Assembly (NCBI GenBank): GCA_025594325.1 | Contig: JANHCV010000002.1 | Location: 2,170,001 to 2,234,000 of the forward strand | Length of the DNA stretch: 64,000 nt | Source: Blastocladiella emersonii ATCC 22665 | Lineage: Eukaryota; Fungi; Blastocladiomycota | Reading direction: 5' to 3' | Shown: positions 33,092 through 63,400 of the stretch, in pieces | Layout of the letters: every line of letters starts with the position of its first letter | Numbering within the stretch: the stretch's first letter is position 1 | The notes under the pieces: model-generated | Told to the model about the DNA's origin: nothing | The model's database searches: none | The model's input: only the letters and a program-made list of their open reading frames with translations | Position numbers and translations under genes: made by a program

Positions 33092-33770
33092 TCACGTCAG
33101 CGGCACCACGACGCTGAGCTCGAACCACCTGTCCACGCTGGGCTCGCCTGCCGTGGACTGCGGCATGACCTCGACGCGCCCGCTCGCGCGTTGCACCATC
33201 TTATTCAGCGCCGCGTACGTCAGGCTGACGTTCCCGAACCCAGACCCGCGCGAGCCGAGCGACAGGTTGAGGCCGGCGCCCGGATCGGCGACACAGTCGC
33301 AGTTGAGCTGTTGAAGCGCGACTGCCGACAGGACCGTACGACTGAGGCGAGCCGAAAGCGTGAGCTCGGGCTTGTGCTTCGCGGAGCGTTCCGGGTCCGC
33401 TATCGATGGGACGGGGCCCAACGTGGCCGCGATCTGGCATTGCGCCTGCGGCTAATAATGTGAAGCGACGTCAGGATGTGGATTAGTTAGGATCTTCCGC
33501 AACCGTAACGAGGCCAATCAGCAACACGAGGGACATCCCGACGGCAGGCAGCGTGCGCGGCGACTGTGTCGAGCGGCGGCCGATGCGGCCCAGCCACCCA
33601 ATGGTGCGGCCGCGGTACTGGCGCCAGTTGATCTTGCGGAAGGCCACGGCATCGTGGAGCGAGGGCGGGTCGTCGTCGCCGCCCGCATCCGGCTGCGCGA
33701 GGGTCCACAGCTCGAGGCCGGGCAGTGTTGTGCGAGTTTCTTCGCCAGCTGGGCGGTTTGCTGCTGACAT
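33092..33770 (-). pseudogene. Internally deleted copy (A) of the CHASE-PAS pseudo-histidine-kinase gene: only exon 1 and the C-terminal about 100 codons remain
   Basis: The N-terminus (LELWTLA..NWRQYRGR..SPRTLPAVGMSLVLLIGL) and C-terminus (LTLSARLSRT..LSLGSRGSGFGNVSLT..WFELSVVVPLT*) match copy C. The first splice donor reads TTACGG instead of GTAC. Confidence 0.85.
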
Positions 33771-44191: not shown

Positions 44192-44329
44192 CTATTCCCA
44201 CTCGATCTCGGCCTTGAACTCGTCGAGGATCTTGTAGCACTTGGATAGGAGCGAGTACAGGACGCGCTGTACGGCGGGGATCTCGCCAACGACGAAGACC
44301 TTGCTGTTGACGTGCAGGTCGTCGAAGCT
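44192..44329 (-). other. Orphan terminal-exon-like segment of unknown gene
   Basis: A CTGAC..TTTTAG acceptor is followed by 45 codons with strong GC3 bias (SFDDLHVNSKVFVVGEIPAVQRVLYSLLSKCYKILDEFKAEIEWE*). No secure upstream exon. Confidence 0.4.
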
Positions 44330-44552: not shown

Positions 44553-47500
44553 TCAAAGGCGTCTGCGGACTCGTACTTGACGAAATGGCGTGAGCGCTGA
44601 CCAGTGCGGAAACTGTGCTTCAATCACTGTATATCTGTGCGTGCAGACAACAATGGGAATGCGGATCGTCAGCTTGAGCTCGGTGCCGCCGTTCGCGTTG
44701 ATCTGCGTCATACTCTGCTCAACCGTTCCGCCCATGCGCGCGACCATCTGCGCCAGCGCCGCGTACGTCAGCGCCACGTTACCAAACCGTGAGCCGCGCG
44801 AGCCGAGCGACTGATCGAGGTCGCGGTCATGTCCTACACGGGCGGCGGCGAGGGCGGCGAGGGCGGGGACGGCGGGGCCGCCGCCATGGGACGCGGAGCG
44901 AACGTCGATGCAGCCCAGCGCAACGCGGCTGATCGTGAGCGACATGCCGATCTCGAGACGGGCCGTGCTGGCTGGGCCCATGAGATCTCCGTTGGACGTT
45001 GCCGTCACGAGAATGAGCCCGCGCGCGAGCGGTAGCGAGGCGCCGATCCCGACGGCAACCGCTTTCGCGAGGACTGCGCGAAGACCGATGCCCGCGTCCG
45101 ACGTGACAAACAGCGCCGCGGCCATGGACAGCGACGGCGACATGTCACGCAGCTGCACGTCGACAAGGATCGCGAGCTCCTTGGCCGTGAGAATCTGCTG
45201 CCGCTCCTCGAGGGAGCCGTCAATGATGCGGCGCAGAGCGAGATCAAGTGGCGGATGCACGGCACTCGGTGCGGCAACAACAGATGGCGCGTCGGAAGCA
45301 GTCGGAATGGCGATGCCTGCGAGCCCGGCCACGTCGTCAAGCATGGCCTTCTATCTCGCGCCGCCTCGCCCGCGTCCGCCAGCTCGCCGGCGGCGTACCC
45401 TTGCGCAGAAAGAATTGCGTGCAAGTCGGCGAGATCCGTGACCGTTTCCAACGCGAGGTCGCCGACGCTGCTGAGAACAAACTCGAGCAGGCGGTCCCGT
45501 GCTCGCGCTGCGTCCGTGGCACGGCGCTCGAGGGCGGTGGCCACGCGGACGCGTTCAAGCTGATCCGAAATGTCGTGGAACAGCACGATCTGGGCAACCT
45601 CGTCCGTCATCGTGTGCTGCGACGCGGCGCCGCGAGCGGCGGAACCATCCGCCGTGAGCACGGGCGAGACCATCCATGGCCGCGCTGTATCCCGTTGCTG
45701 GTCGTCAAAGACCTCGGTCGCATCGACGATGCTGACTGAAAGTCGCACGGGAAGAGTCGAGCCGTCGCTGCATCGCACCGTACCCTCGTGCGTACCCGGT
45801 TCAAATGGAAGCGGTCGCGGAGGCGACGGCGTGCTGTGCGACGACGGCGAGGAAGAGGATGTCGCGGACGCAGTGTACGAGCGAGTCGGCGATGTCGACG
45901 TCGATGAAGAGAAGGAAGCAGTGGCGGGGGAAGGAGACGCTCGAGCCGGTCGAGATTGCGATTCATCAACGTTGACGGCAAGAAGCGCCGAGACGTGCAT
46001 CTGACCCAACTCGGCCATCGAGTAGCCCGTGATCTGCATCGTCGCGTCATTAACGCCCATGATGCAGCCGCCCGAGTCGAGCAGAACCATGGCGTCGGGA
46101 ATCGCCTGCGAATACTCCTGCAGCGTGCCGAGCAGCCGCTCCTGAGCGCGGAGCTGGTGCAGCGTCTGCTGCAAGGCGATGACGCGCTGCAGTCCGCGTC
46201 GAGCGAGCTCGGACATGAGGAGAAACGACGCGAGCACAACGCCGAAGAGGACCCACGGCCACATGGTGCGGAACCGCGCGCGGTACGACCAGGACGGCGT
46301 GCACTCGGTGGTCCACGGCGCCTCGCTCCCAGCATGGAAAGGAAGCACGTAGCGGTCGCGCGCGACGAGATCAGCGGGATCGGTCGGACCATAAACGAAG
46401 ATTTGCTGATTCGGCGGATAGACGACGCGAAGGGCGGCTTCCGTCCTGGTCGGCACGCCGCGCGTGTGGTCAAGTGTCTCGGTAAAGAGATCGTTGAGCA
46501 ACATCGAAATCGTGGCGAACCACTGCGTGAACGGCGTCAGCGCTGTCGCCGTGGGTCGCCGGCGGGTCGGCAGAAACGCGATCCGACCTGGTCCACGTCG
46601 ACGAGCTGCACGGGCGGCGAGATGGCCCACGCCCTCGTGCGGTTCGACTCGAGGATGGCCTTGCGGCGAGGCGGTGACGACATGAGGTTCATGCCAAGGA
46701 TGTGCAAAGCAAACCGCTGTTCCGGATATCTAGATTGAGAGGGTCGGCGAGGAATGGGTGAGTTTGGGACTCCGGAACTTGACGCGGTCGAGGCATACGA
46801 ACATGATGGGGACAGCAAGCGCGTAAGGGTCGCCGGCGACGATCGAAGAGTCGTTGTTCCAGAATCGCTTGCCGTAAAGCGACTCGAAGAGCGGCACCAG
46901 GCTCGGCGTGATGACGGGCGCGACTGCGATGCTGTACGCGATGCCAGGGCTGAACGAAGACCGTCGAACGAATCGAATGAACGTGTCTACTCAAGTGAGG
47001 CCCATGATTCGGTGAGATGCGAGGCGGTTATGGAAACGCATCGAATAAACGCACCGTTTGTGATCTCGGGACTCGAGTACGCGAAGGCGGCGACGTGCTC
47101 AACAAACTGCCGGAGCCGGACCTGCAGCACCGACTCAAGGGACCTGACGCTGAGCTGGCATTGCGTGTGGAAGTCCCGCTCGAAAGTCCGCTTCTCGACG
47201 CCGCTGAACCACAGCAACAGGCCAGGCGCAGCACCTACAAGCATTCAGCAAGGGTCACCACGCGACAGAGTACAGCGAACCTGCGCGAGCGTACCGACAC
47301 CAATCAAAGCGATTACGCAGAAGACGAAGGACGGCAACCACTTCGACGAACGAACATTGAGCCGACCGAGAAGCTTGGACGCCCAGGAACAGCCATCGCC
47401 ATGCGAATCGGCGCTCGCGGCGCGCATTCGGAACGGCGGCGACCGCTGCCACGACGCGCGCGTGTTCTCGTTCGCGCTGTGGAACATGAAAGGCTCGCTG

Positions 47501-47844
47501 GTGCTCCGTAGCAGCGACGTGTCGGAAGCAATCAACCACGGCTGCGCGCCGCTCTCGCCGCCGCCGTCCATGACTGGCACGCGCAGCTGCGAAGCTCGCG
47601 GCGCGGCGGCACTGGGGGCCGAGTGCGGCACGGATGCGGGTTCGCCACTCTGCTCTCGACCCAGACTGCGTATGAATCGCGAGAGCCGAGGCGCGTGCTG
47701 CGGGAACGGGTTGGCCGACGGCGGGGTCGGCGAAGCGAGGCCGTTGCCCAGCGGCGCGTCGCCCGCAGTCACCGCCGTCGGCGCATCGCCGCCAATCGGG
47801 TCATAGAGGCGCCGCCGCATGCCGCTGCCGTAAGTGTTATCCAT
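44553..47844 (-). pseudogene. Full-length but frameshifted copy (B) of the TM-CHASE-TM-PAS pseudo-histidine-kinase gene
   Basis: Intron positions match copy C (47235-47294 and two more). CHASE-like ITNDTFIRF..VAPVI..FE..PIMF(V)YP..LGMNLMS..RRKAI; TM WPWVLFGVVLASFLLMS; PAS AIPDAMVLLD..IMGVN. Frame breaks at about 46798, 46583 and 45350. Confidence 0.8.
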
Positions 47845-48075
47845 TCGTTTGCGTTGCTTCGTGCTGAATGCAAGGATGTGGCGGGCAAGGCGAAGCCGAG
47901 CGCATCGGCGGCCCACAGGGCGTCCCCACACGTCACATGGCACCAGATTGGGTGGCGCGACGCGTCCGCCGCTAGCGCGCGCGTCGCTCACCCCAGCCAG
48001 CACGCACGCCGGGATCTCATGCCAGCAGTCAATGAGATTTGAATGAGTATATGCATTCGGTCAACTACTACGCCC

Positions 48076-50942
48076 TCAGGTCAGCGGCACCGCGACCTCG
48101 ATCTCAAACCACTCGCGCTCAGCGCACTCCTCCTCGGCGCTCACCGAGGACTGCGGCGTCACCTCGACGTGCCCGCCTGCGCGATGCGTCATCTTGACCA
48201 GCGCCGCGAACGTGAGGCTCACGTTCCCGAACCCGGACCCGCGCGAGCCAAGCGAGAGGTCGAGTCCGATGCCTGGATCCGAAATGTCGCGATTGAGCTT
48301 TTGAAGCGCGGCTGCCGGTGAAGTTGTGCGACTGAGGCGAGCAGAGAGCGTCAGATCGGTACCGCTTGTCGCGGACGATGGGGAGGAAAACGCTGCCGAG
48401 ATACGGCACCGCGCCCGCGGCTCGGCGAGCTTGATCGCGACCTCGACGGTCTTGGCCACGATGGCGGCGAGCGCGGGAGCCACCGCCGCGGGCACAGGTG
48501 CAGCTGCGACTTGGGCGAGATCGACCGCGAGGTCCAGCGCCTTGCTGTTGATCTTGCACTGCCGAAACTCGAACGCGCCCTTGATGACGCGGCCCAGGAA
48601 CTCGGCTAGCGTCACGTTCTCGCGCCCGACCACCGTGCTCATCACCTCGCACAGCATCCCGATACCAGAGTACCCCGAAATGTCCTTGAGCATATCGACA
48701 ATGTGCCGCGCGGCCTCGCACGCGTCGTCGAGCTCGCCGTGTACCGCGTCCGTGGCGTTCGCTGACGCGAGATCCGCAATCATGTCCTGCGCGTCCTCGA
48801 ACACATTGCCGATGACGAACTGGAGCAGGTGGCGACGCGCTCGGGCCGCGTCCATGGCCTCGCGCTTGAGGCTCGCCGCCTTGCGCATGTGTTCGACGCG
48901 TTGCGAAATGTCATGGAACAGGATCACCTGGGCGAGGCGGCGCCGCAGCGGGAGCTCGGGCTGGGCCGCGCCGGGCGGCGGCGAGGTGGCCGTCGTCGTG
49001 GTCCACTGCGTACCGTCCTCGACGGCGCTGACCGAAAGCTGAATCGCGAGCGTGGACCCGTCGCGGCGCAGGACGAGACTGTCGTGCGTACCTGGTTCGA
49101 GAGCGGGCGGACGCCGCGACAGGGTTGTTGTAGACGAGCACGAGGATGACGGCGCCGTCGCAGTTGACGACTGATGCGAGTTCCGGCTGCGCAGGGCGGA
49201 GCTGGCGCTCGTCGAGGCCGCGCACCCAGCACCACCTTCGTCGGCTGCCGCCGATGCGGCTGCTGTTGGACCAGTTGGCGCAGCGGGATCAATGGACTGC
49301 ACGCTGAGCACCGTCGAGACGTGCGCGTGGTCGAGTTCGGACATGTCGTAGTCGGTCATCTCGAGGGCCGCGTCGTTGGCGCCCATGATGAGCTCGTCGC
49401 TGTCGAGCAGGAACATACCGTCAGGAATTGCCTGCGTGATGGCCTTCGAGTAGTTGCGCAGCGCGTCGAGCAGCTGTTCCTGGGCGCGCACGCGGCGGAG
49501 CGTCTGTTGCGACACGACCACGCGCTTGAGCCCGCGTCGTACGAGCTCGGCGGCGAGAAGGAAGACCGCGGTCACCGTAGAGAACAGGACCCATGGCCAC
49601 ACGGTGCCGTAGTGGCGGCGGTACTCCTTGGTCGGGATGCACTCGACGCGCCACGGATCGAGGCCCTTGACGACGAACGGCAGCACGTACGTCTCGTGCG
49701 TTGCGAGCGACTCGGGCGTGAGCGTCGCATTGCCGGCGCCAGCGCCAGTGCTGGCCGGGTCGTAGATGAAGACGGGCTCCGGGTAGCCCGGGTAGTGCAT
49801 ACGCAGGGCAAACGCGCTGCGATTGAGCTCGTCGTTGGCGCGGAAGGCGCTCAGCAGCGCGTTGCTGAACAGGTCGTGTAAGTTGAGGCCGACCGAGACA
49901 AACCATCGCGTGAACGGCGTCGCGGGCGTCGGGTCGCGCGGAGCCACGTTCATGAAGAGGATGACGCCGAGCTTGTTGTTGTCGAGGAGGATCACGGGCG
50001 TAGTCGCGGCCCACCGGTTGAGGCGCATTGTGCCGAGGACCGGCTTGCGGCGGAGCGCGTCGGTCAGGAAGCTCCAGCCGACGGCACGACTCTGGCCGCC
50101 GTCGCTTGGCCACCTACAACGATGTTCGCGTCAGCCCATGACCGCGCTGTCAGGTCGTGGTATTATCACGCACACAAACACCCCAATGCACTTGATCGGG
50201 TCATGTTCGGCGAGATTGCCCGGGTTCGACCATATCGTGAAGTTGTAGAAGCGCTCGAGGTCGCTGGCCTGGGACTTGTCGATGACGACGCCCAGCATCA
50301 TGCGAAAGAAGAGCTTACGGTCGAACGAGGAGCGAATTCCGTACTGGCCGAGACGCTCTACGTTGAGCGCGTGTGTCAGCAAATAGATGAAAACCTCGGA
50401 CAGCAATCGCGGATGCGTACCCTCCGACAGGTCGCTTGTGGCGTGTGCAAACGCAGCGAGATTCTGCACGTACTGTACCGAGCGCACGGCGAAAACGGTC
50501 TCGAGCGAGCGGACGCTGACCTGGCACGTGTGGGTGAAGTCGCGCAGGAAGGTTCGCCGCTCAATGGAGCGAAACCACAGACTGAGGCCAAGAGCAGCCG
50601 CTTCATACAGCGCGGGACACGAGGTCAGCGTGGAGTGCGCGCTGCGGACGAGCGTCCGGCAACTGTACCGAGGCCGATCAGCAGCACGAGGGACATCCCG
50701 ACAGCGGGTAGCGTGTGCGGCGACCTTGCGGTGCGGCGGGCGAGGCGACCGAGCACAGCGATCGCGCGGCCGCGGTACCGCCGCCAGTTGACGACGCTCA
50801 AGGAGACGGTGCCGTGGAGCGACGACCGATCGGCGTCCGTAGTCGCGTCGCCCTGTGCCTCCGACGGCGCGAGCGTCCACAGGTCGAGGCCGTGGAACTG
50901 TGTGCGGCCATCCTCAGCAGTTCTGCGACTTGTTTGCTCCAT
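48076..50942 (-). CDS. Intact copy (C): TM-CHASE-TM-PAS sensor with degenerate HisKA/HATPase module and no receiver domain (891 aa)
   Basis: Introns 50601-50668, 50358-50420 and 50114-50173 give a 2676-nt CDS. TM1 VGMSLVLLIGLAAALGLSLW; TM2 WPWVLFSTVTAVFLLAA; PAS AIPDGMFLLD..IMGAND and VLRRDGS..VILFHDIS; G1-like DPGIG and G2-like GSGFG. The CHASE call is by pattern only. Confidence 0.78.
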
Positions 50943-51183: not shown

Positions 51184-53380
51184 CTATGCATCGGTCCACT
51201 CATCGTCAGTTCGAGTTCTGCTGACCGCTGGCCGCTCCTTGCGCTTGGACGCGCGCTTCTTCTTCTGCTGCTGAGGCTCGCCGTCGACCTGCATCAACTC
51301 TCCATCATGTGCTGCATCCACCTCGGGTTCGGGTGCGCGTTCGACCGGCTGCTCAGATGGAACCGTGAGCGAGCGGGCCATGACGGGCTCGAACTGGAAA
51401 AAGTCGCCAAACGCGAGGACGTGCAGGCCGCCAAACGGACGATGGTCGCGGCTCGGGTATAGCGCGTCGAAGCGCAAGTGCATTGCGGCGAACAGCTCGG
51501 CGCCGACCATGGAGATCTCGTCGATAAGGACAAACTTGACGGAGCGGAACGAGCCCTCGAGCTCGGCCTTGGCTTTGTCGCTCATCGGCTTGGTCGCCGA
51601 GACGACGGTGCCGATACCGCACATGGCGTGGATCGTAGAGCCGCCAATGAGCGCCACGGCTACGCCGGTCGGGGCGCAGATCTTGAGCCACGAGCTGCTG
51701 CCCTTGGCGACGAACATGTCGCGGATCGAGTTGATGACGCGACTCTTGCCCGTGCCCGCCTCGCCGTGGACGAGCATGAGGAGCTGCTCGACGTCAGCGT
51801 CGCCGCGCTTGATGGCATCGAGCGTCGACTCGACGTGCTCAACGAAGCGGCGCTGCTCGATGTTGAGCCCTTGAAGGTACGGAGCGAGCTGCTCCTGCTC
51901 CACGAGCTGCACCTGGAAGGCTGGCGGTGCGACACCGCCGTCTGCTTGAACGAGTCGAGCGCGAGGGGGCTCCGCCGAGCGTTCTGCGGCAAACTGACGG
52001 GCATCCTCGTCAGCCTTCCTGGCCAGGTCGGTGTAGTTGACGAGTTGCGCGAACCACGCCGGATCCGAGTCGACCTTGAGTAGCTGCTGGCGAAGCTCGA
52101 GTGGAGGAGCAGTGCGTTTGAGTTTGAGAGCAGTCCGTAGTGTACTACTGAGATGAGGCGCATGGCCGCGTGCTGGTCGTTCTGGGAGATGAGCGACGGG
52201 ATCTCCTGCAGGAACGCGTCGTTGCCGTGAGCTTCCTGCGCGATGCCGACGGGCATGATCTAACCGTCAGCCCCGTCGTCGTTGCCCATGCCAGTACCGC
52301 CGGCACGTGGAAGGCCGACCTGCTCAGGCGTCGCGCTGTTGTCAGCCTCAGAATCGGCGATCAGCTTGCCGGGCGACGTGTTCACTTAGTCGCGGAAGTT
52401 GTTGATCCACCGGAGCCGATCGCTGCCCTGCTCGAGCGTGTATTTGAAGAGATCGAGCGCCTGCGACTACGTCTCGCCGCGAGCTGCGACCACCTCGGTG
52501 ATGACGCGGAACGGCTTGAACAGGATCATGGAGATCATGGCGCGCGACTTGGTGCTGTCAAAGTCGGACGACTGGCCGACCTTCTTGTTGAACAGCGGCA
52601 CGGGAACGACCTTGGCCGCGCGCATCGCCCTAATGAGCTTGCCGACTGCAGCACGCGTGTCGCGGAACTTGTACCGCGGCTCGGCGTGGCGACCGCGCTT
52701 GGCGCGCGGCGCGTTGCCGTTGCCGGCATCGTTGTCAGGCACGGACTGCTTCAAGCGGTTCGTCGCGGACTTGATGGGCTCCATGCGACAGCACCGGACA
52801 AAGTCGTAGAGCGAGAGCGACTCGAGCTCGCTGGGTTGGTACATGTAGTGGTCGGCGATCGTGATCTTGTTGGTGACCGGGCGCTTTGAAAACGTGATGT
52901 GCTCGTCGTTGTTCTCGTCGTCCTCCTGCTCGAGCTCGCGCTCATCGTCGACTGCCGCGGCGCCGTTCTCGCCGACGCGCTGCGCGTCAGTCTTGTTGCT
53001 CGGTGCGTCCGAGCCCGCCGCGTTCGTAACCATACGCAGAGGAACTGATAGAGTGAGACGTGGGCGGAGCTGTACGTCGTGTAGACCCACGTCTCCTCGC
53101 CCTTGCGGATCAGGTCGAGCGCGATGTACTGGCCGCTGATCTCACGAGACGTTTTTGAGCAATGGACGAGGCCGGGCAGAATGGAGCCGACCAAGAGCGG
53201 GAGCGGCACCGCCGAGTTGAGCTCGCACTCACGCAGCTTCTTAGCGTGCTCGAGCAGGGCGTACGTGTTGTACGAGGATGGCGGCACCTTAAGAGGACGA
53301 CGGCACCTTGGCGACGTATTTGGTGATGTAGTAGGTCGGGTGGCGCGAGTTGATCAAGTGGTGCATCAGGCGCGCGGAGA
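51184..53380 (-). mobile_element. Decayed Helitron (Rep C-terminal part + truncated PIF1 helicase)
   Basis: Rep-type YYITKYVAK (about 53307-53334), HYMYQPSELESLSLYDF and MILFKPFR; PIF1 motifs HGEAGTGKS, APTGVA, LIDEISMV, PFGG..GDFFQFEPV. Multiple frame breaks; the later helicase motifs are missing. Confidence 0.82.
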
Positions 53381-55999: not shown

Positions 56000-58900
56000 A
56001 TGTCGTCGTCGTCGCAGCACCCGCCGCCGTCTGACGCGTCCGCATCCATGGCGGCCCCACCCCCAGGCACTTTCCACCCGCCCGGAATGCTCCCCTTCCC
56101 GCAACCTTCTGCAGGCTTCACTATGAACCAAAATAACGCGTCCTCAAACAATATGGGCCGCGGCGACGCGCGTGGGAACGCGGTTCCCACGTCCCCCGCT
56201 CATGCGTCGCGCGAGTCCGCCGCCTCACACACCGCCATCCACAACGTCGGTCGTGCCCGCATGCACAACAGCTTCCTCCGCATCCGCTTTGATTACTTCC
56301 ACGGCATCCCCAACCCGAAGCTCGCGATCCGTCTCGCTGCAGGCGCCGTGGCGTTGCACGGCCTGGAGATTTCTTACCGCACCGACCTCGCTGGGGTCCA
56401 GTGGATCTTCTTCCACGCCGTCAACCCGGTCCAGCACCAGAACCTCGCCGCCGCCACTCTGAACATCCCGAATGTCGTTGCGTTTCAGTTTGAATCAGTC
56501 ACCCCTGATGACACGAACGGCCCCTGGACCAGCCTCAAGATTACTCGCATCACCCGTGATGTCCCCCGCGACGAGATCGTTGCTGTTCTCCGCGGAGCGG
56601 GCTTCGAGACGCACTTTATTGGATTCCGTGGCAAGAAGACCGCCGCTACGAAGTGGGCGATCGTACTTGGTCAGAATCGCGCGGCCGCCGCTAACCTTGT
56701 CACTGCTCGCGCTCATATCATTCACGGTACGCAGGTGCAGATCTGGAACGTTGCTGACAATGTAGCTGAAATCCTCGAGGAGGAGAAATCGCGTTCGCTT
56801 CTTCTGTGCGGGCTCCCGCGCAACACGTTCATCAAGGACTACCGTCTCTCTTTCCTCGCCAACCACGGCGCGGTCACTTGGTCCGTTTCCCGCCCCGCTT
56901 CTGGCCTGCCGCCGCGCACCGCGTGGGTCGTCTTCAAGTCGCAGGAGGCCCGCAACGAGGCTCGCAAGGTTGCGTTCCGGCTTGATGGCTGCGTGCTCAC
57001 CTGGGCCGCCCCGGGTGAGAAGAACTGTTTCACGTGCGGCGACGCCACACACCTGGCCGCGGCCTGCCCGCTCAAGCCCGCCGCCCCGGCTCGCCGCCCT
57101 GCTCCCTCCAAGAGCAACGCTGCTCCCACGCGCGGTCGCCAGGCCGCAGCCCCTGCTACTCCCCGCAATGGATCGCCCGCTTGCACCCCCTCTCAGAAGG
57201 GCAAGGGCCGCCGCACCGCGTCGCAGGTTCCTGGCGCCACTTTTGTGATCACCAAATCGGCGACCGCGTCGCCCTCCGAGGCCGCTTCCACGCGTGCTGC
57301 GTCCCGCGGCTCGAGCCCGCGGCGCCAGCACGTCTCGTACTCTCAGGCCGTCGTTTCTGGCCAGTCCTCCGCCGCCACACTTGCGCTTGGGGAGCGCGTC
57401 CGCATGCTTGAGCAGGAGAACCAGCTCCTGAAGGCCAAGGTTTCTGATCTCACCAAGGAGAATGCTCGCCTTCAGGCGGAGCGCCGTGCTGACATTGAGG
57501 CGGCGGTTGCGATGGTTGAGAAGCGCAACCAGTCCATCCTTGCCACGCTGGGCAAGCTTGCCTCGACCATGGACGAGTTCGCTCGCTCGCCCAGCAGCCC
57601 GCTCGCGCCGATCGCTGACAGTCTTGCTAACATTGCTTCCTCGCTTGAGGCTACCGAGGCGGCAACGTTGCTGCTGCCTGACTTTGCCCCATCTGACAAA
57701 TCGAATGCTGACGCTGTTATGAGCAAAGCCCCGCCGCCCTCATCAGAGGCCCCCTCTTCTTCCACAATTAGCGAGTCCTCGTCGTCTGGGGAGGAGGGCG
57801 AGGAAGACGATCTCATGCCGCCGCCCGCCGTCGCCGCTGCTGCTGCTGCGGCTCCCTCTGCAGCCGCGGTCATTCCGCCGCTCACCGTCCAGACGGCTGC
57901 CCAGCATCGGCCCAAGGCCCACGGTTTGACAAAGACCGCCGCGCGCACTGCTTCTGATTCGCCTGTCACGGCGGACCGCGCTCACCTGCCCAAGGCTCCC
58001 AAAGTTGCGTTCAGCAGTAACGCCAGTGAGAGTCCCGCTGCCGCCACCGCTTCCTCGCTGAACAATGGCAAGGCCCCAGTTCGCTCCTCCTCCAAGACTC
58101 GTGGGGGGGGGGGGGGGGGGGGGAGCGAGCGGTCAGTAATGGCCGCGCCCTGCGAGCATTCTCCCCGCCCGTTCAACGTGCTCTGCCAGAACGTGAGCAG
58201 TCGCATCAAGGCTGGCGCTTACCTCAGCCTTGTTGAGCACACTAACAGTTTTGATATTTCCGTTGACGCACTCTTCATTTCAGAAACGAGACTAACACCT
58301 ACTTCGTACGCATTGCTCAAGGCTGGCCTTGGGCGGCAGCTTGAGATAGATTGGACAACGCGGTGGTCCAGCCACAGCTCTGCTGTGGGTCACGGCGGCT
58401 GTGCACTGTTTATCCGCTGGGACTTTGAGCCGTTCAGCGGCGGCTGGTTTGCGATCCCAGGTCTCGCCATGGCGGCTGTTCTACAGCGGCCGCGGCTGGG
58501 ACCACTTGTTCTGATTTCTGTTTACTTCCCCCCGCACAACGGCGCGCACGAGGAGCTGAAGGAGCTCGCCGCATTCATTCGCCAACGCGTGCGCGCTGGC
58601 TGCGACTTCATCCTTGGGGGCGACCTCAATGTGGTGAGCAGCTGCCGCAGTCGCGACTTTGTTGACTTTCTGGTCAGCGAATTTGGCGCAGTGGAAGTGG
58701 GCGCGTATTTTGGTGTGAACGCGCCCACGCACTGTTGCGGGGGTCGGCTGGACCTCATGTTCGCTACAGAGGGCGCGCTTGGGTGCTCTCGGCGGTATTC
58801 ACTGGTCGACCTTGACCATGGGACAACGATTGCGGCTGGAGGCCACGGCCCTCCTGTCGCTTTTGTTGAGGCCAGTTCCCCATGGAAGCGTGGTGGTTTC

Positions 58901-61900
58901 AATCACCGTGGCGTGTTGCTTGAGACGGTCGGCGCTGCCTGCTTTGACCGCAAGATGGTGGCTTGGGTCCAGGTGGGTCTGGACAAGGCTGGCCGGGTCT
59001 TGCGGGCGGCGTGGCGCCCCTCTGAGGAAGCCATGGAAAAGTTTGCAAGGGGCGTTTCCGCCCGCCTAGCTGCGGCGGATCCCGCCGCTGCCCAAGTCTC
59101 CGTGGAGTCACAGTGGGACTGCATTTGTGACGCTCAGACCCACGTCGCCCTTAGCATCCATCTCCTACGCTACAGGGCGGATGGGAAACAAGCAAGGGCT
59201 AACAAAAACGATCGCTACGTACGTTCAGATCTACACGAGGCCAAGATGCAGCTCTTGTGGGAGTGGAAGCGCGCTGAGTTCGCTGAGCCAATGCCCGCCG
59301 TGGCCCACACGCTCGTTCAGGAGCTCAGACAGAACATGGAGGCGCTCCTCGCGCGGCCTCCCAAGTCGCAATTTCGGATGGCACGTACGCGCATCACCCA
59401 TGCTTGCGCCCGCAACGCCGCTGCCAAGGAGGAGGAGCGGATCCAGGCGGCGGTGCAGCAGCGCAAGCAGCTCTTCAGCAGCAATTTGCGCGTGGCGCTC
59501 AACTTGATCATGAGCCGCAAGCGTGTGAACGCGACCATTGACTTTTACCACGGCCCTGACGACAAGTCGACCATCCGCGATCCCATCAAGGTCAATCGGC
59601 GGGTCGCCCAGGAGGTGGGTGGCTGGTTTGACCGCGTGGACATTCCGCCGTTGTCTCCAGAGTGGGCCGCCGCTTTCGCCCCGCTCAAGCCCGTTGACCC
59701 GTCAATCTGGGACTCGCTGATGCTGCCCATCTTGGCAGACGAGCTGGACAACGCGCTCAAGGCGGTCCACCCCAATCGCGCGCCTGGCCCGTCCGGCATC
59801 ACATACCACTTCCTGCGTGACTCTGGTCCTCGCGCGTGGGCTGAGCTCTTGCACTTGTTCAACAATGTGCTCCGCACGGGCGTTGCGCCCCTGCAGTGGC
59901 ACAAAGGCTCCATCTACCTGATCCCCAAAACCAACGCAGGCTACACGGGCACCGCTGTGGCGATGCGGCCCATCACGCTCATGGAGACTGCGTCAAAGCT
60001 GTTCATGAAGATCCTTGTCTTGCACATTATGCCCGTGCTTGTCCAACATGACGTGCTGCGCGGCGCAAAGTACTCTGTTCTCCCTGGAACTGACACGGCT
60101 GTCCCAATCCAGCTCCTCTCGTCTGCCATTGACCACGCGCACGACATGGACCAGCCGCTGTACGTATACTTTGAGGATAAGAGCAAGGCGTTTGACACGG
60201 TGCCGCACCAGATCCTGCGGCTGGCGCTGCGCCGCATCCGCCTGCCTGAGCCGTTCGTTGAGTTGTACTGCACGCAGTTCCTTGAGGGTTGCACATTGCG
60301 CGTGATCACAGCGTATGGGCTCACTGAACCAATCCCGTGCCTGCGCGGCGTGCCCCAGGGCGCCGTTGAGTCTCCGCTAATGTGGTCCTGTCTCTACAAT
60401 CCCCTCCTTTGTCATGATTCACTTGTTTGCGCAACAGACGCATTCCCCCTCACTCCCTATGCAGGTCGTGGCAATTTCAAGACTGCGTTTGTTCCGTCAG
60501 GTTCCCTTCCGCGTAGGCGTCTTTTTCCAGGCAACGAGAACCGCTCGCTCATCAAGCTCAAGAACCTGTCGTTTGTGGACAACGCGGCCTTCTTTGCCTG
60601 CACACCGGAAGGTCTCCGCCGCACCGTCAGCGGCGTTGACTCTTTCAATTTGGCGTGCGGCATTCGCTCCAATGCCGCCAAGGGCGCGATCCTTGCAATT
60701 GGTGCAAAGCAGGCCCCCGTCATTGAGTCCAATGGCGTCGAGATACCAAGGATTTCGAGCGATGGAGCGTTTCGCTACCTGGGCGTCTTCCTCAATGGCT
60801 CGGGCAAGGGCGGACCGGCCATGTCGTCAATGAGGGAGACGTTTGGGCGCGCGATGCTCTCGCTGCAAAACAAGAAGACCACCGCCAAGATGGCCGTGTA
60901 CGTGCTCAACGCGGTCGTCTGGCCGGCCATGGTGTACCGCTTGCGCAATTTCGTTCCCAAGCTCCAGCACCTGCAAAAGTGGGACGCGTCCGCGCGTGCG
61001 CTGATCCGCAAGAAGCTGCACGTTGCGAGCGCGTTCCACGCCTCGGCGCTCCACCACCCTGACGTTCTTGCGCTCGCGTCCATCGAGGAGCAGGTGACGC
61101 GGTACCACATGAAGGCGGTGATTTCTTCTCTCAACCATCGCGACCTTACCATCCGAACGGCCGTCCGCTGCTCGCTCTCCGCTCTTCAGACTTATCTCAC
61201 GGTCCCTTACTCGCCGCTTGCCGTCCCTACCAGCAAGTGGACCGCGGAGGCGCCGTGCTACTTTGGTGGCCTGCTCAAACTCATGCGGGTCCGCCGCCTC
61301 GCAATTGCCGATCTTAGCGGCGAGTACACCATTGGCGACCCGACCACGGACTTGCCAATCCGCCAGCTTGTCCCGTGGGGCGCGATCCCGCTCACTGTCC
61401 GCCGAGCCATGCGCGGCTACTTCATATCGCGCATGTCACAGTTGATCGAGTCCCGCTCACTCTCAGATGGCATTGACTTTCGGTTTGCAGATCTCATGCT
61501 TTCTGGCCGCAACAATCCAGCAACCAAGGGTCGCAAGGACGTTCCAGATCGCACAAGCTTCATCAACCTTGCAGCTCAGCTCCTCCAAGTTTACCTCAAC
61601 GACACTCAAGCCCAACAACAGTGGGGCCCATGCGCAATGCAATGCGTGCGTGAGCCCTACCCAGGACCCCGCCACAACAATCAAGCAGTTCATCAAGCTC
61701 CAACCATCAACATCCGCAACGCCTTCACCTCTGGCCTCCGCGTGATGCAAGTCCTGGCTCAGGCGGGCCCGCTCGACCTCAATCCCGCGCTGGTGCCAGT
61801 CTTCACGGACGGCTCCATGGTGCCAGCCGCGGATGGGGCCAGGTCGTCCCGCCTTGGAGCGGGCGTGTGGTTCCCAACGCTTGGTGTCCGTCTGTCAGCG

Positions 61901-63400
61901 CGCGTCTCGCCTGGCGTAGCTTCTTCTACGCGAGCCAAGGCGTGGGCGATGGCGCTTGCGGTCGCCGCAGCACCACAGCGCTTGCGGATCCACATCTACT
62001 CTGACTCCCAGGCCACCATTGCAACGGCCATCCGCGTCACGTCGTTCCTTTCCTCCTCCTCGTCTGATTCTGGCTTTCCTTCTTCCCTCAGTTCTAGCGA
62101 TGCATGGTCGTTTGCAGTGGCGGCCGCGCGCGCCCGCCGTGTGACCTTTTTGCTCTCCTGGGTCCGCGGGCACGCGGGCGTTGAGGGGAATGAGATCGCC
62201 AACGAGCTCGCTGCTGATGGGGCCGGTCTGGCCCAAGAGCTCGTCCTCGCTCCCCCCTTCGCCAAACAGATCCGGTTAGATGTTCAGCATGTGTTGCACT
62301 TTGATGACGTTCCTGTTCCAATTCCCTCCACCGCGTTCCTCAAGTTCCTGTCCACTGCACGTTGCGAGGCCACCCTTCGCTCCAAGTCCTCTCTCCTCTC
62401 CTCCCTCCTCTCCTCCCCTGACCCCGAAGAGCACCCAGACATGACCGCGACCTCCATGGCCATTGGCTCCGGCTCCCGCCCGCTTGATAAGCGCACGTCC
62501 AGCGCAGCGAACCACAACATTGTCTACCGAGTGCGCCACCTGCTTGGGATCACACCCACTCGCTCACTACTGCACGCTCGCCACCCTACTCTAGTCACGT
62601 CACAGGTGTGTCCTAGGTGCCGAGCAGCCGACGACGACGGAAGTCACTGGATGATCTGCACAGGTAACGCCGCGGCTGTGTCCGCTGCGCTGGGCTCTGC
62701 CCAAAAGTCTGTTGAGCGCTTCGCTCGCCGCGCCGCCGCCTCTGTTGCCGCCGCAGCCGCCGCAAAACGACCACTTGAATCTTCTACTACACCACCAACA
62801 CCACCACCACCACCCGCTCCGTTTTCTCCTGTCCATGGCGAGGACCTCAGCACGCCCAGCTACACCATGGTCAGCAAGTCCGTTGCTGGCGCAACGCGGT
62901 CCCTTGCTTTGTTTGGCCGTCGCCTCCTCGCCTCCATCTGGCGCGACCCCGCCGCTCTGTCTCGCCTCGCCGGCTGCGTTGTACGCGCCTGCGACGTCGC
63001 CTTCGCCTCCCACTCGCTCCAACTCGACTGCGACCTTGCTTGACCCATCCTCGCAGCCATCACGTCCGTCGCCTCCCAATCCCTCTGGCGCGGCGCCTGG
63101 CTCTCTCACTCTGCTGGCTGCGCCAAGGCCAACCCACTCAATTTTTCTGAAGCTCCGCTGCGCAAGCCGCGTGAGCGGGCCCGCCGCCCATTTGGCCAGC
63201 CCATTGCCACACTCGAGTTCATCAACTGCCACCACTACTGCTCTCGCTGTCTGAGCTCGCTCCATTCCCACGTCCCCAACCCGTCTGGGCGTGAAGAAGA
63301 CCCGCCAGTGTGCCCACCGTCCACCGCGGCCCAGGCGGCTCTTGTTGCAGATCCCTCTGTCCAACTTTGGCTGCTCGGTTCCCCAAGGCACATCCAGTGA
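56000..63400 (+). mobile_element. Near full-length LINE: ORF1-like gag (RRM + CCHC + coiled coil), APE endonuclease, reverse transcriptase, RNase H, Cys/His tail; probably inactive
   Basis: CFTCGDATHLAAAC knuckle. APE: QNV, ISETR, SVYFPP, GGDLN, RLDLMF. RT: APGPSG, RPITLMET, DKSKAFD, GVPQG, FVDN. RNase H: FTDGS, SDSQA, WVRGHAG. The frame stays open for 119 codons past the TGA at 63041, to TGA 63398-63400. Confidence 0.93.
58103..58123 (+). repeat. G21 homopolymer at the LINE ORF1/ORF2 junction
   Basis: 21 consecutive G, 13 nt upstream of TAATG (58137-58141). Confidence 0.9.

Follow-up and report, generated by a model that had tools for sequence, protein, structure and literature searches.

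We analysed a 64,000-nucleotide stretch of the genome of Blastocladiella emersonii ATCC 22665 (contig JANHCV010000002.1, C11:2170001-2234000; hereafter the window), a GC-rich genome of 32.65 Mb in 21 contigs. Two collinear, diverged copies of one gene, which we call B and C, are arranged head to tail on the window's minus strand and share approximately 40-50% protein identity by tblastx. Our main subject is copy C (48076-50942, minus strand), an intact four-exon gene whose predicted product combines a membrane-anchored CHASE-like sensor, a PAS domain and a C-terminal module related to histidine kinase transmitters, and whose nearest relatives, like copy C itself, carry no receiver domain.

Gene model and domain layout of copy C

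A first-pass annotation of the window, made from the sequence alone, had described copy C as an intact frame of 891 codons that has three intron positions in common with copy B. Gene models derived from a frame-by-frame comparison of C and B with five intact paralogues (L002, L004, L005, L007 and L008) bear out both statements. The exons of copy C fall at 50942-50669, 50600-50421, 50357-50174 and 50113-48079, with a stop codon at 48078-48076 (all on the minus strand), and total exactly 891 codons, or 2673 coding bases. They are separated by introns of 68, 63 and 60 nucleotides (nt) with donors GTACAG, GTACGC and GTGCGT, CTGAC branch-like motifs and AG acceptors. All three intron positions, together with their phases, recur in B and in each of the five other paralogues, and since the corresponding stretches contain stops or frame changes in several paralogues, we conclude that these are real introns.

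Two variants of this model were considered and set aside. Intron 2, at 63 nt, is in frame and free of stops in copy C, and so could in principle be read as coding; however, between C and L002 it is unconserved whereas its flanks are conserved, and in L004, L007 and L008 it contains stops or shifts the frame. An alternative donor for intron 3 at 50179, which would give 889 codons, was rejected on the comparison with L002, which favours GTGCGT at 50173 and thus 891 codons.

In the predicted protein, two hydrophobic segments flank approximately 290 residues, which places the sensor outside the cytoplasm between two membrane helices. The first transmembrane segment (TM1, 50574-50714, minus strand; Kyte-Doolittle 2.11) is split by intron 1, with one part closing exon 1 and the other opening exon 2. 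The second (TM2, 49534-49602, minus strand; exon 4 residues ~171-193) was likewise placed by hydrophobicity and carries a WPWVL motif that is invariant in our alignment. Between them lies the CHASE-like sensor (49603-50573, minus strand), encoded by exons 2 and 3 together with ~170 codons at the start of exon 4. Copies C and B were searched exon by exon or in six frames with the Pfam CHASE profile (PF03924, gathering score 25 bits), which gave 17.8-19.9 bits in copy C (49846-50106, minus strand, spanning only profile positions 73-165) and 22.9 bits in copy B; both lie under the cut-off, since searches of this kind can reach no more of the domain than its exon 4 part. A Pfam scan of the exon-wise open reading frames likewise reported no CHASE match in the upstream exons. 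The profile does score above the cut-off in paralogues on contigs C15 and C1 (34.8, 33.4 and 25.4 bits) and in full-length proteins of the family (38.3 bits in P0003, 30.3 in P0010 and 29.3 in P0009), the CHASE-positive members of which span Catenaria, Allomyces and Blastocladiella.

Downstream of TM2 follows a PAS domain (48904-49446, minus strand) with a low-complexity insertion rich in Ser, Thr and Ala, which ends at a conserved LFHDIS junction. In copy C this domain exceeds the Pfam cut-offs of two profiles (PAS_8, PF13188, 27.3 bits vs. 21.8; PAS, PF00989, 25.0 bits vs. 22.6), and PAS matches were obtained in 7/7 aligned paralogues. The hydrophobic segments, the PAS score, the CHASE scores of the paralogues and the transmitter homology described below thus agree on the order that the first-pass annotation had proposed, namely membrane helix, sensor, membrane helix, PAS and transmitter.

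Homology, fold and catalytic residues of the C-terminal module

The C-terminal module of copy C comprises the 288 residues after the PAS domain. Alignments and predicted structure delimit a helical hairpin resembling the dimerisation and histidine phosphotransfer (DHp) region of histidine kinases (48667-48903, minus strand), and these two sources together with Foldseek delimit a Bergerat-fold domain resembling their catalytic and ATP-binding (CA) region (48079-48609, minus strand). Domain profiles are silent on both: a Pfam scan found no match to HisKA (PF00512) or HATPase_c (PF02518) at E<=1 in C, B or any of seven paralogues, and none of the 15 HATPase_c matches in the genome falls at a locus of the receiver-less family. 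A profile built from the seven paralogues returned no hits at E<=10 against all PDB sequences.

Searched against 1.84e9 representative proteins, the seven-paralogue profile matched 15 proteins, from B. emersonii, Catenaria anguillulae, Allomyces macrogynus, A. javanicus and Sorochytrium milnesiophthora (all Blastocladiomycota) as well as one metagenome protein. The weakest of these matches, Sorochytrium P0015 (E 3.4e-6), has the layout CHASE-PAS-HisKA-receiver, with no HATPase_c match in the stretch before the receiver. The whole query profile aligns to residues 477-802 of P0015 (hhalign 96.8%), and those residues in turn find canonical kinases with HisKA, HATPase_c and receiver, some of them over 87-91% of length; judging from these alignments, P0015 is a bridge from the receiver-less family to normal kinases. 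In hhalign comparisons with 16 canonical HisKA+HATPase_c transmitters, the family profile reached 96.6% (E 5.7e-10, over 254 columns across DHp and CA) with P0015 left out, and 98.3% (E 1.5e-14) with P0015 included.

Structure prediction leads to the same fold. An AlphaFold2 model computed from a 14-row alignment (mean predicted local distance difference test, pLDDT, 79.5; predicted template modelling score, pTM, 0.76) consists of a long helical hairpin and an alpha/beta domain; a run from the seven paralogues alone reached a pLDDT of 48.7 and was left out of the fold search. Foldseek returned 185 matches in the PDB at E<=0.001, and the best of these, as listed, are nearly all transmitters of histidine kinases or phytochromes, led by GacS, phytochrome A/B, DivL, CpxA, ZraS, RetS and HK853. 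Because profile-profile homology, predicted structure and Foldseek matches agree, we conclude that the module of copy C is, by descent and predicted fold, a complete DHp+CA transmitter.

The catalytic positions of this transmitter are occupied by other residues. At the H-box, the phospho-accepting His is Gly in copy C (codon 48810-48808) and, counted over the intact B. emersonii paralogues, in 7/7, with Ser in copy B; in Catenaria and Allomyces the position is mostly taken by Gln, Arg or Asn, and His occupies it only in Catenaria P0010 and Sorochytrium P0015. The N-box Asn, which serves Mg-ATP binding, is replaced by Val (48441-48439 in copy C), with Leu in Catenaria, and the adenine-binding Asp of the G1 box is replaced by Ser, which is followed by Arg (Ser codon of copy C at 48333-48331). 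In place of the G2 box (GxGxG) stands a strongly conserved LGSRGSxFGN, the glycines of which align with those of G2 only in part; the lid motif LGSRGSxFG of copy C lies at 48252-48226 on the minus strand. The positions that are invariant in all 14 aligned Blastocladiomycota proteins are a His in DHp helix 2 (copy C codon 48705-48703), the Asp seven residues after it, a Gly and a Phe of the lid, and a GG pair.

Most of the motif calls in the first-pass annotation stand up to these alignments. It had reported that the phospho-accepting His is gone from B and C, that the N-box is degenerate and that a G2-like remnant persists: the H-box strings it quoted are present and align to real H-boxes (Gly in C, Ser in B), its N-box strings align to kinase N-boxes with Val at the catalytic Asn, and the GSxFG motif is conserved. 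Its reading of DPGIG as a remnant of G1 fails, as DPGIG sits in the lid loop, does not align with G1 (the true G1 reads Ser-Arg) and is missing from the nearest paralogue, L003, and we regard it as a chance resemblance.

The invariant helix-2 His, the conserved lid GSRGSxFGN and the GG pair could be taken to mean that copy C is still an enzyme, albeit of unconventional chemistry: a Ser/Thr kinase, a phosphatase acting on a histidine phosphotransfer (HPt) protein or response regulator, or a protein whose helix-2 His accepts phosphate after trans-phosphorylation by a real kinase. Plant phytochrome modules, which are among the top fold matches, add to this case, since Ser/Thr kinase activity has been claimed for plant phytochromes as well as for subfamily II ethylene receptors. 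Nevertheless, we consider an enzymatic role quite unlikely. In every member the Mg-ATP Asn and the adenine-binding Asp have given way to Ser or a hydrophobic residue, and this holds even for the Sorochytrium protein, whose H-box is normal; HATPase_c signal is absent at E<=1. The helix-2 His, moreover, is present too in relatives with a canonical H-box His, and is therefore ancestral, not compensatory.

A receiver is missing along with the catalytic residues. The receiver profile (PF00072) has 22 matches in the genome, with none in the window at E<=0.01 and the nearest approximately 240 kb away, and the stop codon of copy C is followed by the ATG of copy B only 231 nt later. Copy C thus ends right after the CA fold and lacks a receiver, both as first annotated.

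Family history, selection and proposed mode of signalling

A genome search with the main exon of copy C identified about ten paralogues on contigs C1, C11, C15 and C18, and the receiver-less family as a whole was found in Blastocladiella, Catenaria and Allomyces only. We computed a tree (MAFFT and FastTree; 17 sequences, 607 trimmed columns, root assumed) whose rows leave out B, L006 (identical to L005), L009 (broken), P0001-P0006, P0008 and P0014. In it, all receiver-less proteins form one clade (support 0.96), within which there are genus-specific expansions in Allomyces, in Catenaria and in B. emersonii (seven copies, support 0.998). Sorochytrium P0015 and the receiver-bearing paralogues of B. 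emersonii fall outside the clade, with long branches in between.

These receiver-bearing CHASE paralogues (L013 and L014 at C15:2.573-2.597 Mb, L016 at C15:252-256 kb and L015 at C4:1.353-1.357 Mb) are like copy C in their CHASE-PAS-transmitter layout, in having no Pfam HATPase_c match and in their homologous transmitters (hhalign 95-97%), and differ from it in having kept the receiver and in their place outside the receiver-less clade. L013, L014 and L016 keep the H-box His in the form HE[LM]RNP, and L015 has Arg there. Because the ATP site is already dead in P0015, which keeps both His and receiver, these sequences suggest that the ATP site was likely the first to go, and that loss of the His and the receiver followed in the ancestor of the receiver-less clade. 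P0015 and some of the B. emersonii paralogues (dead ATP site, His and receiver kept) would then form a series with the copy C family (all three lost), one that would serve the study of how phosphorelay receptors get rewired.

The module is maintained by selection. Pairwise ratios of nonsynonymous to synonymous substitution rates (dN/dS, Nei-Gojobori) across the transmitter are 0.27 for C vs. L002, 0.31 for C vs. L003 and 0.32 for L002 vs. L003 (dS 0.16), and the CHASE-C/TM2/PAS part gives 0.22. The first-pass annotation had proposed dN/dS of the CA region of copy C as a check, and the values of 0.27-0.31 obtained across its transmitter are not near 1; we conclude from them that the copy C transmitter is under purifying selection.

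We therefore favour, as the probable reading, that copy C is a dimeric, single-sensor CHASE-PAS membrane receptor with a catalytically dead transmitter and no receiver, whose output runs via protein contacts. As in real kinases, ligand binding to the CHASE sensor would be relayed via TM2 and the PAS domain to the DHp bundle; the output would consist of altered protein contacts of the pseudo-transmitter in place of phosphotransfer, by analogy with RetS and GacS, with DivL and CckA/DivK, and with subfamily II ethylene receptors and CTR1. Candidate partners would be the receiver-bearing CHASE paralogues with an H-box His, the few canonical hybrid kinases, and an HPt protein or response regulator, and the best candidates for a contact surface are the lid motif LGSRGSxFGN and the invariant His of DHp helix 2. 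On these analogies, ligand-controlled protein contact seems the likeliest signalling mode of copy C, and the output proposed in the first-pass annotation, phosphorelay-independent or decoy signalling through heterodimerisation or protein contact, would be the most reasonable one to expect.

Several points weigh against this reading. The family member P0010 from Catenaria does carry a His in its H-box, and copy C may still bind ATP, given that its glycine-rich lid motif is strongly conserved; some degenerate kinases retain nucleotide binding or gain Ser/Thr kinase activity. The CHASE score of copy C itself is under the 25-bit cut-off in the exon-by-exon search, the splicing and expression of the gene are deduced from conservation alone, and the dN/dS estimates are only pairwise, with dS of 0.7-0.9 for pairs that include copy C. 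The partners named above, likewise, are likely candidates chosen by inference.

The same receiver-bearing paralogues also suggest a different role, in which copy C acts as a decoy or dominant-negative receptor, titrating their ligand or forming dead heterodimers with them, and so damps signalling with no output of its own. The CHASE-PAS-DHp architecture common to the two groups, their homologous transmitters, the H-box His kept by receiver-bearing paralogues, and the many copies of the family with their frequent birth and death are all in keeping with such a role. We think it unlikely, however, since the CA-like domain and lid motif are as constrained as the sensor and are kept across genera, and a pure ligand sink or a DHp poison would need neither; in addition, the receiver-less clade is old and separated from the receiver-bearing proteins by long branches, which speaks against close pairing.

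A bolder extension of the protein-contact reading is a long shot, in our view. It would have a CHASE pathway in Blastocladiomycota that works without any phosphotransfer, with the receiver-less family as its ligand arm, with the lid motif and helix-2 His as a new effector-binding or catalytic site, and with some members serving as the long-sought receptors for zoospore or gamete attractants (e.g., Allomyces pheromones), the last of these being suggested by the expansion of the family in water fungi that are motile and chemotactic.

Bacteria and plants have well-known pseudo-histidine kinases, and the copy C family bears their marks, with the fold kept, the catalytic residues lost, dN/dS of 0.27-0.32 and a phylum-wide clade. 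The bacterial proteins DivL (PDB 4q20) and RetS (6dk8, 7n0e), both top fold matches, have a transmitter fold without kinase function, as we propose for copy C; DivL signals by binding a response regulator, and RetS by heterodimerising with the real kinase GacS. Unlike copy C, both belong to bacteria and carry other sensors. An ATP-binding CA domain is retained in DivL, and receivers in RetS, whereas copy C has neither the His nor an ATP site nor a receiver. CckA is controlled by DivL, which reads a response regulator (PMC4211667).

Among eukaryotic systems, the kinase-related domain of plant phytochromes (PDB 8isj, 7rzw and 8f5z) is one of the best structural matches (E 8e-8 to 3e-7, identity 12-16%). 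Like the module of copy C it is a DHp+CA unit without the phospho-accepting His, and it serves dimerisation and signalling; phytochrome itself, unlike copy C, is a soluble photoreceptor with no CHASE domain and no membrane anchor. Plant ethylene receptors of subfamily II and the ERS type act through protein contact with CTR1. They resemble copy C as membrane receptors of the hormone type that have lost kinase motifs and, in some cases, the receiver too, and differ from it in sensing through an ethylene-binding membrane domain and GAF rather than CHASE and PAS, in occurring in plants and in their independent origin. Within the plant receptors, a degenerate kinase is described for subfamily II and the ERS type, some of them without a receiver (PMC5285503).

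Published work already describes hybrid kinases with a CHASE sensor in early-diverging fungi, Catenaria and Allomyces among them, as cytokinin receptor homologues (PMC5285503; group XIX in PMC6324907). Group XIX shares with the copy C family the phylum and a TM-CHASE-TM sensor followed by a transmitter, but is described with canonical hybrid-kinase domains, whereas the copy C family is without the phospho-accepting His, the ATP-binding residues, the receiver and any Pfam HisKA or HATPase_c signal. It would therefore be missed by kinase-domain surveys, and database entries for its receiver-less members name them hypothetical or PAS domain proteins. Our search of the literature turned up no description of fungal CHASE receptors that are kinase-dead or lack a receiver. 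As fungal two-component surveys detect receptors by their kinase domains, a CHASE clade of Blastocladiomycota, with approximately ten copies in B. emersonii as well as members in Catenaria and Allomyces, is invisible to them, and including it corrects the count of cytokinin-receptor-like sensors in this phylum. If our reading holds, a fungal CHASE lineage has independently taken the route of ethylene receptors and phytochromes, in which the kinase dies and its fold is kept as a signalling scaffold, and has gone further than the plant cases in losing all three of His, ATP site and receiver.

Broken neighbours, transposon surroundings and other paralogues

Copy B (44553-47844, minus strand; introns at 47294-47235, 47054-46987 and 46802-46730) differs from its paralogues by a 4-nt deletion at 46583/46582, within the CHASE domain, and by a 1-nt deletion at ~45351-45356, which hits the codon for a His that is invariant elsewhere; the shifted frame runs straight into a TAG. 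There is no homopolymer at either site, and the other paralogues stay open in the same assembly. On account of these two frameshifting deletions, the open paralogues and a deposited annotation that covers only the 3' piece of the gene (P0006), copy B is, on sequence evidence, a pseudogene. We also considered whether copy B might work by way of small introns at the frame changes, and rejected this, as the changes are deletions of 4 nt and 1 nt inside conserved codons. The P0006 model splices the 3' end of B (up to 44649) to a 45-codon exon at 44195-44329 (minus strand); this extra exon comes at the cost of the final, conserved strands of the CA-like domain, and we take it for a probable artefact of annotation.

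Further along lies copy A (33095-33770, minus strand), an internally deleted relic in which a stretch homologous to exon 1, at 56% identity, is joined to the final ~115 residues of the CA-like domain, at 59% identity. Its database record is a protein of 200 aa (P0008), with a TAG inside the annotated intron.

On its other side, directly upstream of C, the array adjoins a fragment of a PIF1-like helicase (PF05970, E 3.8e-22) at 51184-51912 (minus strand), possibly reaching to ~53100, which may be Helitron-type debris. At 56000-63043 (plus strand) there is an open frame of 2347 aa with endonuclease (PF03372) and reverse transcriptase (PF00078) domains, which looks like an apparently intact retrotransposon of the long interspersed nuclear element (LINE) type. 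Copies B and A are dead duplicates of gene C within this transposon-rich stretch.

Such surroundings raise the question of whether copy C, too, is non-functional debris, the whole array being the remains of a decaying family. The two frameshifts of B, the stump that is A, a further paralogue, L009, that is also broken, and the helicase fragment and LINE frame that flank the array all point that way. Set against them are the 891 open codons of copy C and its intact GT..AG introns, dN/dS of about 0.3 against its nearest paralogues, and six other intact paralogues, together with orthologues in two more genera, that keep the same module, and we regard decay of copy C as highly improbable. The first-pass view that the loss of kinase motifs was selected rather than decayed accordingly survives for C and its family, with their dN/dS and retention in three genera, and falls for the frameshifted pseudogene B. 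Its description of a tandem family at this locus holds insofar as two diverged paralogues lie head to tail, with the qualification that the array consists of one gene plus two wrecks.

Elsewhere in the genome, two pairs of paralogues are arranged as inverted copies. L002 (C18:1068346-1070307, plus strand) and L003 (C18:1153594-1155531, minus strand) lie 85 kb apart, and are identical in DNA over the CHASE-C/TM2/PAS part (dS 0) and only 90% identical over the transmitter part (dS 0.16), a pattern by which the pair is, as far as its sequence tells, a gene-conversion mosaic or a recent partial duplication. L005 (C15:1078481-1080142, minus strand) and L006 (C15:1210951-1212612, plus strand) lie 130 kb apart with identical scores and identity, which points to a recent segmental duplication.

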